Assembly (NCBI GenBank): GCA_010909165.1
Contig: MU008192.1
Location: 62,001-126,000 of the forward strand
Direction of reading: 5' to 3'
Length of the DNA stretch: 64,000 bases
Origin: Anthoceros angustus
Taxonomy: Eukaryota > Plantae > Anthocerotophyta
Shown here: in pieces, positions 26,532 through 30,950 of the stretch
How positions within the stretch are numbered: position 1 is the stretch's first letter
How the letters are laid out: every line of letters starts with the position of its first letter
Translations under genes and position numbers: made by a program
The notes under the pieces: generated by a model
Databases searched by the model: none
The model's input: the letters and a program-made list of their open reading frames with translations, nothing else
What the model was told of the DNA's origin: nothing

Positions 26532-27299
26532 ATGGAAAGCGTACCGAGCGAAGCTGGTTTCGGTAGGAGCAGATTCGATTCTCTGCTCTTTGATCTGGAT
26601 GATACGTTGTACCCGCTCAGCTCGGGCCTCGCTGCCGTGTGCAGACAGCACATCCAGCAGTTCATGGTGGAGAGGCTGGGAATGGAAGCTTCCACGGTGC
26701 CAGATGTCTGCTTGCGTTTGTACCATCGGCACGGCACGACTCTGGCCGGGCTGATCGCGGAAGGGTTCCGAGTGGATTTGCATGAATTCCACGCTTTCGT
26801 GCACGGAGCTCTCCCCTACGATGCGCTGCATCCGGATCCGGTGCTGCGGAGGCTGCTGCTCAGCATGCCGCAGCGGAAGCTAGTGTTTACCAACGCGGAC
26901 AGAGTGCATGCCTTTGAGGTTTTGCGCAGGCTGGGGCTGGAGGACTGCTTTGAGGGCGTAATCTCTCTGGAATCCATTCAGCAGGCGGAGGATAGTGGTG
27001 TAGTCTGCAAGCCTGCGCAGGAGGCGTTCCGACGGGCCCTGGAGATTGCGCAGGTGGATGCTGCTACAACTCTGTTTCTAGATGACAGCGTCCGAAACAT
27101 TGCTGCTGCCAGGATTGCAGGCCTTAATACTGTTTTGGTCGGCAGCTTTGAGCGGTCAGAAGGGGCATGCTATGCTGTGGCAAGCTTGCACAATTTGCGG
27201 CAAGCTGTGCCGGACATTTGGCAAGAGTGGGACAGCACGGATGAGCTCAGCCCTTGTGCCACTAATGCGATTGATAATGCAATTGAAGTGCAAGCATAG
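26532..27299 (+). CDS. HAD-superfamily hydrolase, pyrimidine 5'-nucleotidase (SDT1-like), 255 aa, no CDS introns
   Basis: Motif I FDLDDTLY, motif II VFTNAD, motif III CKP, motif IV FLDDSVRNI. Confidence 0.93.
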   Translation: MESVPSEAGFGRSRFDSLLFDLDDTLYPLSSGLAAVCRQHIQQFMVERLGMEASTVPDVCLRLYHRHGTTLAGLIAEGFRVDLHEFHAFVHGALPYDALHPDPVLRRLLLSMPQRKLVFTNADRVHAFEVLRRLGLEDCFEGVISLESIQQAEDSGVVCKPAQEAFRRALEIAQVDAATTLFLDDSVRNIAAARIAGLNTVLVGSFERSEGACYAVASLHNLRQAVPDIWQEWDSTDELSPCATNAIDNAIEVQA

Positions 27300-28391
27300 T
27301 TGCAGCGTGCCCTAATGTAATTCATCTTTCCTATGGACCCACGTCCAGGTACATGAGATATTGCTTTGAGCTCTGCTCAAGACTCACAAGATTTCTGTTC
27401 CATGTTGTTAAACGATCAGGTCTCACTTGCAACCTCAACGTGGATGGAGAGACCCTTTCTCGAGTTAGGGTTAGAGGCAAACCAAGGTTGATGAGGTCAT
27501 GATCCCGTTGACAACCTCGTTTATCTCGTAAGAGGGCCTTGTGCTAGTTAATCTCATTGCTTAAATTCATCCCCATGTTGATTTTTGTTGTTCATCTTGG
27601 GCAGCGTTGTATGCCAGGCGTGGTGCGTATTCCCATCATAACCTTCTTTTCCTTGTAACCTGCAGGAGTGCGCTTGGCAGGTGTTTGTGTTTCGAAGATG
27701 AGAAGTGAGTTTTTCAGACTTCGGCTGGGGGCGTGGTTATCAGCTGTTTTTGTGACGAGAAAAGCATGCTTGTCATAGTTCTGGCAGATGTGGGGCAGAG
27801 TGTATGTATGGCAGTTGTTTGAGCTACTCGTGTGTCAATCGGCAAAAGGACGTTGCTACTCTTCTTCAAACAACTGAAGTACATCCACCATGCTCCCACA
27901 TTTGCTGAATCAATGGCATCTGAACACTTGTCCATACATGGATCTTTACCGTCATACAGCAGTTGCGATCACAATTGTTTTTAGGGATGGATGAGGTTCA
28001 TGTACATGTGACGATACATTGTCTTCAATCCTATGCTTCACTTTTTCTAATCCACGTTTTTTGTTTCCAACTTTTGCTCCTATCCTTTCCATGTCTTTGT
28101 TTACGGCTTGTGTCACAATCCTTTTCTTATGACGTGGTTTGATTTTGAATGGTGTCCGGAGAAAAATATTCTCTGTGCGTGAAAATGGTTCACAAGCGCG
28201 ATGCACAAGTGGGATACTTTTGGCAAACATAAAGTCCCAGTCGGATTTGTATAGCGGCACCTATTCCCCTCACTGGAGAACGTAGACAGTGCCATTTACG
28301 ACCTCCAGTTTTGCGGGTAACGACCATCGCATGGGCACCTCAGAATGTATCTATACAGGCTAAGAATAACCTAACAATGAATGTAGACAGG

Positions 28392-30082
28392 CTACTGATG
28401 AGATTTTACAGAGGAACCTCTGAAATCCTTAAAATTATGAAATCCAAGTCTGTGAAGCCAGGACCTAGCGGTCTCACTGGAAATTTTCCGATGAGAGGGC
28501 AACGCCACGTCCATCCCACCCTCTGTTTGCTTAGGGGCCTGCTGACACAAACAGGAGCATTGATGAGTACCCCTTCGTCAAAGGTGGCGGTTCCCCTCTG
28601 ATTCGGCGCAGGAACCTCACCACTCACCTGTACTTCTAACAGAAGATCAGTGTTGCAAAAATCTCGGAACTGGTTGATGATGGACTCTTTGCGTGGAGGG
28701 TCACCCTTCTTCGGACAGTTCTGTTCTATCCATTGCCGTGCACGAGCTTGCAGATGTTCTGGTTGAAGAATCCACTCAACCTTAGCATGCTTCCCCTGAA
28801 AGTACAGGTTTTCCATGTTAAAATCCCCGGAGGTAGCTCCACCACCCAAACGTTGACGAGGAGAAGTGATAAAGCAGCTGAGACATACCTGCCTAGAGTC
28901 GGAGAAAGTTCCGTCTCCACGACTTTCCCAATCCTCAACCCACTTGCGTGCTGTTTTCACAGTCACACCCACAGATTCACCTGCCTTCTCATAAGCATCT
29001 GTGACCTACACCAAGCATCCCAGCTACACCAGTATTTCAGGCCCGGCATTGTGAAACATCCAAATGTTCTCCAAAAAAAGGGCAAATGCACACAGAAAGT
29101 GAAAAAGCAGCGAGCATTCAATGTTGGACGAGCAAACAGCAACGCAGACTCACCAGACGTTCCATCACAACAGAGAATCAAGTGCATCATTCAAGATGAA
29201 GACACAGATGCAAGTCCTCTACACGTACTACACATCTTCCATCCAAGATTCTATCATCTAGACAATTAAATAAGAGAGCCAGCACAATGCCTTTCCCTCA
29301 AGCTGACTTCCTCCAAGGTTCGCAGAATCCTCCACAACCTTCAGACAGAAACAGGGCAGCATCAATGCTGCACGTTGGGGAAAAGGTTTTGAAATCCATG
29401 ACAGGGGAAAAAATAAAGTGCGAACGGCCGGCAAGTGGCTGCCGATGCAAGCGATCCCCACAGCACACCAAAACCAAAGTAAGAGTTCCAAGCAGATAGG
29501 CACCTTCAAGGATGGAGACTTGGGCCGACTGGAGGCCATGTACTTGTAGAACTCCGAGACGCAGAAAAGTTGTCTCGTCTTGATCGGCAACTTGAGCACC
29601 ATCTCCAGACTCTTTTGCCTCTCCTTCTGATAATGAGTCTGCGGCTTCCCCGTTTGCCGCACTCTCTTGTTCGGCTTGATGGACTGCTGTTGCGTACAAT
29701 CCGCACCATTGGTGTGCAAGGTGAGAGAGATAGGCGGCCAGAACTGCTGTTCCAGAAGCTGCTGCGGTGGCGCGAAGGGAATATCGGGCCTCTCCAACAG
29801 CTGCTGGAAAGTGAGCTCAGTCTCGCGTGGCCTGTCCATGGTGTGAAACGTGATGTCCACAACCGGCCTCTCGATCTGCTGCGGCGACTCGATATCCACG
29901 TCCCGGTCTCTCTCCGCATCAAGAACGTCTTGCCGCTCCTGATAGGCATCCAAGCCGACCGTCCGGTGGTGATGCTCATGGTGGAGGTGCTCCTTGTACG
30001 CCTGCACGTCCGGGTGCCCGTGCACCGCATGCTCGTAGCTCTCCATCTGCATTTCCGCATGCTGGTACATCCCGACCTGCAT
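28392..30082 (-). CDS. 4-exon gene (30082-29504, 29005-28889, 28795-28628, 28541-28392; about 337 aa): His/Gln-rich N-terminus fused to an IS630/Tc1-like transposase DNA-binding region, no catalytic domain
   Basis: Three GT-AG phase-0 introns join into one open frame: ...SLK|VTDAYEKAGESVGVTVKTARKWVEDW...SDSRQ|GKHAKVEWIL...ARQWIEQNCPKKGDP...FCNTDLLLEVQ|...RKISSETARSWLHRLGF...SHQ*. Exon lengths 579, 117, 168 and 150 are all multiples of 3. The intron 1 acceptor is the least certain boundary. Confidence 0.72.
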
Positions 30083-30637
30083 TTTCTCCTACCGAAAATT
30101 TACAAGCACAATTCTCCAACCTCAAGCACCGCCTCCACTCCCTCTCACTCTTCCTCACCTCCCGCTCCCGCAATTCCCCACACTTGGAATCCGATCACCG
30201 AAACTCCCTCTCCTCACCACAAGCATCTTCCAGCCCCGTCGCCCTTGGAAAGCTAGCTCTGCGCCGGCCAGGCCACACAGCTGCATACTTCCTTCCCCCT
30301 CCACGCTACACCTTCCTCCGCTCCCTCATCCTGCCAGCCACGCTCTCCACCACACCAGGTCACGGCAACAAGCAGCGCATCGTGCTCTCCCGCAGAGATC
30401 CGCACCACCAGCACACCGCGCACCACCTCCGGCTCAACTCCCGCCACCACCGGCCTCCCCGAGCTCGCCGCACATTCCCCGGCTGCGCAGCAGCCCACCA
30501 GCAGGAATTCGCACACCGCGAAGGCAGAATCGCAGCAGAACGCTCGATCACTCGGGCGCAGGAGGAGAAGAGAGGGAACGGGAGCGGATGCTGGAGTGTA
30601 AGGGAAATTTGAAGGTTAGGTTTTCGTGGGGAGGCTC

Positions 30638-30648
30638 TTATAGTATAA
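30638..30648 (-). promoter_or_regulatory. TATA-like box upstream of a CT-rich leader of the 30082 gene
   Basis: Minus strand TTATACTATAA followed by a pyrimidine-rich leader. Confidence 0.3.
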
Positions 30649-30950
30649 GGGAATTCTTGGGCTGCCTCCCTTGCGGAGGGCCGTTCCGTTGGCAAAGGCC
30701 GCCGGGCAGCCCTGCGGGAAGGGCCGGGCGAGGTTCAATGCACCTGATCGTGAAGACCGCGCCTGCTGAGGTGGCGACACACGGCGGCCCCACGTCGGAT
30801 GCCCGGGCCCGCCGCAGGCCAAGCAAGCGCGAGCCTCGACTAGGCTGGCGACGCCCGTGCCAGCGTGTCTCGATTCATGCACCTGCGCCATGACCACTTT
30901 TAGTTTATCCGAAAAGATGTCGGGACCGCATGAGCCAGACGTTTGCAAGG

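Follow-up and report, generated by a model that had tools for sequence, protein, structure and literature searches.

A four-exon gene of the hornwort Anthoceros angustus, probably exapted from the DNA-binding region of a Tc1/IS630-type transposase

A 64-kb stretch of the Anthoceros angustus genome (GenBank assembly GCA_010909165.1, contig MU008192.1, positions 62,001 to 126,000) was analyzed at its full length. This stretch is referred to below as the window, and coordinates without a contig name follow its numbering. Its GC content of 50% fits a hornwort. On its minus strand the window carries a four-exon gene with the coding sequence at 30082-28392. We consider it probable, at roughly 0.8, that this is a host gene exapted from the bipartite DNA-binding region at the N terminus of a transposase of the Tc1/IS630 superfamily. 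A preliminary description of the sequence had proposed a domesticated IS630/Tc1-like transposase-derived protein. That proposal is supported by orthologs in other plants, by the ratio of nonsynonymous to synonymous substitution rates (dN/dS), by profile homology, and by the loss of the catalytic DDE domain and the terminal inverted repeats (TIRs).

Gene structure and homology to transposases

A search of public sequencing runs returned 21 runs from 7 studies, and four of them, one for each of organisms A-D, were compared over 27800-30700. Contigs from all four runs skip exactly 498, 93, and 89 nucleotides (nt). The skipped segments run CT..AC on the plus strand, which is GT..AG on the strand of the gene. 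The run from the source organism (X1) is identical to the window, with no difference. As the joints are seen in four organisms, splicing is observed here, beyond prediction. Lower depth intron-containing contigs and alternative joints occur beside the intron-less contigs. The gene model is as follows.

30082-29504, minus strand: exon 1, coding, 193 residues from the ATG; residues 1-134 are variable, after which the conserved module begins
Within exon 1, minus strand: start of the conserved module, a basic stretch and the LKLPIKTRQLFCVSEFY helix, placed by alignment to orthologs
29503-29006, minus strand: intron 1, 498 nt, GT..AG, phase 0, joint in 4/4 runs
29005-28889, minus strand: exon 2, 39 residues, first helix-turn-helix (HTH) (AGESVGVTVKTARKWVEDWE)
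28888-28796, minus strand: intron 2, 93 nt, GT..AG, phase 0, joint in 4/4 runs
28795-28628, minus strand: exon 3, 56 residues, containing the GKHxK linker motif and the helices that open the second helical domain
28627-28539, minus strand: intron 3, 89 nt, GT..AG, phase 0, NAGNAG acceptor, joint in 4/4 runs
28538-28392, minus strand: exon 4, coding, 48 residues and the stop codon (28394-28392), recognition-helix motif KISSETARSWLHRLGF, tail NFKDFRGSSVKSHQ

The transcript contigs bear out the arrangement put forward from the sequence, namely four exons joined by three phase 0 GT-AG introns, and all joints were found in the four organisms. Intron lengths of 498, 93, and 86 bp had been given; the first two stand, and the third is 89 nt in the transcripts. 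Likewise, the frame is uninterrupted as described but encodes 336 and not about 337 residues, because the second AG of a CAGCAG acceptor is used in all four organisms. Intron 2 by chance lacks an in-frame stop, and the four joined exons form a 336-residue frame without stops.

The protein has two parts of opposite charge. Residues 1-134 are acidic and His/Gln-rich, consisting to 40% of Gln, Glu, His, and Asp with a net charge of −15, and this N terminus is probably disordered. The C-terminal module of ∼200 residues has a net charge of +15 and comprises, in order, a basic stretch, the first HTH, the GKHxK linker, and another helical domain, which ends with WLHRLGF. The C-terminal motifs quoted previously are present as read. 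The tail encoded by exon 4 stops at the position where related transposases have the motif DGHER.

A profile of 197 conserved positions was run against 1.84 billion representative proteins and gave 125 matches at the cut-off of E ≤ 1e-3. Apart from the family members and genomic fragments of their exons, these form a long tail at E values of 1e-12 to 1e-4. The motif DGH[ED][RKQ] occurs in 44 of the 116 distant matches; where WLHxLGF is followed by at least 25 further residues (33 matches), it lies within 30 residues in 21. Full-length matches continue into a DDE core with the motifs hHDE[CS], FDQSSNH, and HCELNPIE and a D-E spacing of 110-126. The continuation KG.Y.DGHER and then a DDE domain, which had been given for this transposase group, is thus seen in the profile-matched transposases. 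These relatives match the NCBIfam IS630 model NF033545 in their HTH as well as their catalytic parts (E values of 1e-7 to 1e-11), with the alignment starting at model position 15 and spanning the HTH region; their matches to Pfam DDE_3 are sub-threshold. Among 44 aligned N-terminal regions, HTH_23 was detected in 13, HTH_29 in 7, HTH_28 in 6, and HTH_33 in 2. In direct BLASTP comparisons, the window protein is 28-37% identical to six of the transposases over 95-175 residues (pairwise E values of 1e-13 to 1e-16). The alignment to one of them (P0016) runs to the last residue of the window protein, residue 336, which faces the DGHE of P0016. The similarity anticipated between the C-terminal part of the protein and transposases is therefore found in profile searches and relates the C-terminal ∼200 residues to transposase N termini.

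An association of this transposase group mainly with fungi and animals had been suggested. The transposase relatives found here come mostly from metagenome or Logan contigs, and the sole pointer to host taxa is an ESM Atlas feature search that returned Basidiomycota, Rotifera, and Mucoromycota. The 858-residue relative P0055 is identically encoded on 15 metagenome contigs. In four of these (L004-L007), it lies in an element of 4.07 kb with 37-39-bp TIRs and the ends TA-CAGTGCC...GGCACTG-TA, within four different flanks. Such TA flanks and CAGTG ends typify Tc1-type elements. The two relatives that were checked, P0055 and P0037, are real transposons.

L004:15-4079 and L005:113-4177, also on L006 and L007: P0055 element, intact-looking Tc1-type
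L008:29-2999: P0037 element (531-residue protein), 2.97 kb, perfect 29-bp TIRs, beginning TA-CAGTGCC, with TA on both sides

The nearest named lineage to these relatives appears, from sequence motifs, to be the Sailor/DD82E group, which is characterized by a DD78-111E spacing, the motifs I/VVYLDET, VIIMDNA, and HCELNPIEL, and a TATA target duplication (PMC8533490). The same study reports a single land plant case (PMC8533490). The catalytic Glu consensus of the relatives, HCELNP[IM]E, matches the HCELNPIEL of Sailor. However, their D-E spacing of 110-126 is at or beyond the range of Sailor, the second Asp lies in FDQSSNH instead of VIIMDNA, and the bounds are TA instead of TATA. Because of these differences in spacing, second Asp motif, and flanks, we do not claim Sailor membership for the relatives.

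Over ∼130-175 N-terminal residues that align at 28-37% identity, the plant gene shares with the KG.Y.DGHER transposases (such as P0037 and P0055) the first HTH, the GKHxK linker, and the second HTH ending in WLHxLGF. It differs from them in lacking a DDE core, TIRs, and TA-bounded ends, in having introns, and in its unrelated acidic N terminus. A tblastn search with 13 catalytic regions detected no DDE remnant in the window or in the hornwort-like contig L001 (described below), the best E value being 0.16. This agrees with the preliminary description of a protein without a catalytic domain and with no DDE domain downstream. No TIRs flank the gene, as had also been noted; only short chance inverted matches were seen around it. 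The finding that had been named as pointing to an ordinary transposon was many TIR-flanked copies with a DDE domain; the 64-kb window holds a single copy, without TIRs.

An AlphaFold model built from 44 sequences had a predicted local distance difference test (pLDDT) score of 86.5. In this model, helices at 30-46, 56-67, and 71-84 form a first bundle, and helices at 107-120, 130-143, and 171-180 form a second. The helices of exon 2, a segment that matches HTH_23 below the cut-off (E value of 0.006), have pLDDT values above 90. The model thus agrees with the presence of two HTH-like domains, for which it is not diagnostic. An earlier model from 8 sequences was poor (pLDDT of 65), and searches with that model were uninformative.

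Orthologs, selection, and phylogeny

Orthologs were sought with the frame of exons 2-3 as the query and then with one ortholog as the query. Proteins annotated as hypothetical were found in Selaginella moellendorffii (317 residues), Diphasiastrum complanatum (344), Sphagnum troendelagicum (390), and Sphagnum magellanicum (388). The window protein is 65% identical over 221 residues to each of the lycophyte proteins from Selaginella (P0002) and Diphasiastrum (P0003) and 63% identical over 191 residues to a Sphagnum protein (P0004). The exon-exon junctions of the window model lie within continuous conserved stretches of the ortholog proteins. The window and lycophyte proteins terminate no more than ∼15 residues past WLHRLGFxNFKD, and the Sphagnum proteins have a tail of ∼30-35 residues past this point with no DGHER. 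Sphagnum genomic ORFs predicted by prokaryote-style calling (P0007, P0010/P0011, and P0009) are interrupted at the same three positions as the window introns, indicating that the intron positions are older than the split of the hornwort and Sphagnum lineages.

With exon 1 alone as the query, a single relative was found among 5.8 billion proteins, namely P0001, which is 77% identical and is encoded on a 7.6-kb Logan contig (L001) of hornwort-like sequence. The N terminus therefore appears to be lineage-specific. L001 carries the whole gene in the same four exons, with introns of 365, 141, and 128 nt. Exon 3 is 92% identical between the two by tblastx, and the L001 protein lacks the extra Gln at the intron 3 acceptor. 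The gene is conserved under strong purifying selection. A dN/dS value near 1 had been named as evidence against a host gene; the value found between the window and L001 was 0.07 overall, by the Nei-Gojobori method for this one pair, with a dN of 0.088 and a dS of 1.26 that is near saturation. It was 0.035 for residues 135-336 and 0.15 for residues 1-134.

The same module occurs in three pieces on two further contigs, L002:5228-6911 (Logan SRR23617307) and L003:5005-7217 (JGI metagenome 3300060284). These copies are more divergent, differ in exon layout, and have a different tail after WLHKLGY. They have no catalytic region: tblastn with the 13 catalytic regions gave nothing at E ≤ 0.1 on either contig.

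An unrooted tree of 48 N-terminal regions (170 columns) was calculated with IQ-TREE. The seven DDE-less sequences form one clade (support of 100/98). Within it, L002 and L003 branch as sister to those from the hornworts, Sphagnum, and the lycophytes, and terminal branches are short (∼0.02-0.35, compared with a median of 0.73 over all rows). DGHER-bearing rows surround the plant clade and lie on both sides of the midpoint. We place the transposon at the origin and the host gene at the end of this history because the HTH-HTH-DDE layout is general in the superfamily, the bacterial IS630 elements included.

Origin and proposed function

Several results weigh against a transposase origin. In searches of Pfam and NCBIfam, the plant proteins matched no family above threshold; the sub-threshold matches were to Pfam HTH_23 (E values of 0.006-0.05) and, over the first HTH, to NCBIfam IS630 NF033545 (E value of 0.073). 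The fold matches are middling and of a nonspecific HTH kind, with Z-scores up to 7.5. The best solved structure was the insertion sequence-encoded HTH protein TnpE (Z-score of 7.5, root mean square deviation of 2.3 over 54 residues), followed at Z-scores of ∼5 by the DNA-binding domains of Mu transposase, TnsB, Myb, trihelix, and Zeste-type proteins. The DNA-binding domains of Tc1, Tc3, Mos1, and Sleeping Beauty were not among the top rows of the fold search. The comparison of the predicted structure with Tc1/IS630 HTH domains that had been suggested therefore yielded the two helical bundles but no specific Tc1-type match in the top rows. Because no Tc1/mariner DNA-binding structure surfaced, we do not claim structural membership in that group. 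Foldseek with the 44-sequence model gave nothing significant, the module profile had no match among the sequences of solved structures, and phmmer with the transposase P0037 against the same sequences gave nothing useful. Orthologs in other plant lineages, as looked for in the preliminary description, were found in the hornwort-like contig, Sphagnum, and lycophytes; however, no synteny with L001 was detected beyond the gene itself along the 7.6-kb contig. The unrooted tree, taken alone, gives no direction from transposon to host. Finally, the run type "RNA" of the sequencing runs is an automatic guess, although contigs that lack the introns and join at canonical splice ends are difficult to account for in any other way.

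If the gene is an exapted transposase region, a mechanism for its product can be outlined. The protein would enter the nucleus, where its two helical domains would bind specific DNA sites, in the way that the ancestral transposase recognized its own terminal repeats. The acidic N terminus, likened beforehand to the activation region of a transcription factor, would recruit other factors, making the protein a regulator of transcription or chromatin that would be unable to cut or move DNA. In the GKHxK linker, the single invariant glycine may occupy the place of the GRPR-like minor groove motif of Tc1-type proteins. We give somewhat less than even odds to a history in which a single, very old domestication before the hornwort/moss/lycophyte split gave rise to a sequence-specific regulator, in which the GKHxK linker replaced the GRPR-like motif, and which was kept in non-seed plants but lost in seed plants and several model bryophytes. 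The event could be earlier still if L002 and L003 derive from streptophyte algae. If this history is true, the gene would represent the first characterized IS630/Tc1/mariner-derived transcription factor family in plants.

The main rival for the function is a role in transposon control, in which the protein would keep its affinity for terminal repeats and block or silence the remaining elements of its family. For P elements and certain Tc1/mariner elements, competitive inhibition by transposase products that only bind DNA is an established concept. By analogy with these, retention of the whole TIR-binding region and nothing else is what such a role might leave behind. However, the window contains no related element, and a module at a dN/dS of 0.035, kept across hornworts, mosses, and lycophytes with short branches, is unlike a gene in an arms race. 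The variable acidic N terminus suits a recruiting role equally well. We therefore consider transposon control unlikely.

A different order of events, in which a transposase captured a plant HTH region or in which both descend from a common HTH ancestor without exaptation, would be compatible with the unrooted tree, in which a well-supported branch has the plant clade on one side. Against this stands the HTH-HTH-DDE layout, which belongs to the whole IS630/Tc1/mariner superfamily, together with the match of NF033545 to the relatives, which starts at model position 15 and spans their HTH region. Moreover, DGHER rows are found all around the plant clade and on both sides of the midpoint, and the similarity reaches up to the DGHER position, which is where the plant proteins end. 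We regard such an ancestry as improbable. Least probable by far is an ordinary decayed or nonautonomous transposon fragment transcribed by chance: the clear transposase homology would fit one, but the frame is intact over four exons that are spliced alike in four organisms, orthologs from Sphagnum and two lycophytes have the same end point, the intron positions are common to Sphagnum, the dN/dS is 0.07 at a dS of 1.26, and there are neither TIRs nor a DDE remnant.

Exaptation of a transposase DNA-binding region, the origin that we prefer, belongs to a well known class of events. Plants have repeatedly gained regulators from domesticated transposases (FHY3/FAR1, MUSTANG, SLEEPER, and ALP1). Domesticated plant transposases include FHY3/FAR1 and MUSTANG (Mutator-like), DAYSLEEPER (hAT), and ALP1 and HDP1/2 (PIF/Harbinger), all of which are immobile, conserved, and under purifying selection and have DNA- or chromatin-directed roles. 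To the best of our knowledge, the known plant cases trace back to the Mutator, hAT, and Harbinger superfamilies, and it was in seed plants that they were discovered. Among them, ALP1 (PMC4671723) and FHY3/FAR1 (PMC13306707) have been described as transposon-derived host proteins. The present gene resembles FHY3/FAR1, MUSTANG, DAYSLEEPER, and ALP1 as a conserved host gene from a DNA transposon protein under purifying selection. It differs from them in the superfamily of origin, here IS630/Tc1/mariner, and in having kept only the DNA-binding region, whereas they keep most of the transposase body. Its known range is also different, comprising hornworts, Sphagnum, and lycophytes and not seed plants.

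Bipartite HTH modules related to the N termini of Tc1/pogo-type transposases also occur in other host proteins, namely the Pax paired domain and the pogo-derived CENP-B/Abp1. By analogy, the present protein would be a further host protein with a bipartite HTH DNA-binding module. Pax and CENP-B/Abp1 belong to animals and fungi and stem from different branches of the superfamily, and our profile and fold searches gave no sequence or structural match to them.

Neither the plant family nor its IS630/Tc1/mariner origin or distribution among non-seed plants appears to have been described. Literature searches on the ortholog locus tags and on Tc1-derived plant genes returned nothing on the plant family. 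In the searches made, plant orthologs were confined to hornworts, Sphagnum, and lycophytes and always carried the annotation "hypothetical protein." With transformable bryophytes at hand, the gene lends itself to a clean test of the use to which a transposase DNA-binding module is put after ∼450 million years in a host, and it raises the question of why some plant lineages kept it and others apparently did not.

Transcript ends, alternative joints, and neighboring sequence

The remaining features of the transcription unit are listed below.

30637-30648, minus strand: TATA-like box, TATACTATAAG on the gene strand, a putative promoter element from sequence
30083-30596, minus strand: 5′-untranslated region (UTR), 514 nt; X1 record 6 spans 29502-30596 with zero differences
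29291-29338, minus strand: cassette exon in intron 1, 48 nt, in frame, adding 16 residues with no stop; the intron downstream of it is GC..AG
28261-28391, minus strand: 3′-UTR, ∼131 nt; X1 record 2 ends at 28261

The longest transcript contig has its 5′ end at 30596, and the TATAAG at 30642-30637 precedes this end by ∼46 nt. A TATA-like box followed by a CT-rich leader had been noted here. The TATA-like element is present, but the sequence is CT-rich only just after the box, and the 5′-UTR itself is G-rich (43% G in the mRNA sense). The 5′-UTR contains five upstream ATGs with short upstream ORFs of 6-43 codons, which, judging from their presence in a long leader, may permit translational control.

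The cassette exon is defined by the joints 29336>29502 (165 nt; runs X1 and X2) and 29004>29290 (285 nt; runs X1, X2, and X16). Contigs of organisms A and B show both joints, and those of D show one. In contigs of C and D, exon 2 is entered through another acceptor, which lies 18 nt farther upstream (29006-29023, minus strand); the resulting 18-nt extension carries a stop in the window sequence. In run X15 (organism C), record 8 is a spliced contig of 1260 nt that is ∼84% identical to the window and has the same exon boundaries (aligned on 28627-28794 and 29501-29766). It stems from a diverged paralog or from another species in the sample.

Downstream of the gene, an unrelated, intron-less ORF of 255 residues lies in convergent orientation at 26532-27299 on the plus strand, with its transcript contig ending at ∼28003. 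It bears a DLDDTLY motif, typical of HAD-type hydrolases, which makes it a candidate member of that group. The 3′ ends of the two genes are ∼260 nt apart, and read depth is near zero at 27994-28187; in organism B, one contig spans both genes. At 27864-27907, many contigs in all four runs match for ∼35-40 nt and then continue into unlike sequence, with a high summed depth. This segment may be a short dispersed repeat found in 3′-UTRs, and it is overlapped by an imperfect inverted repeat at 27792-27822/27866-27896.

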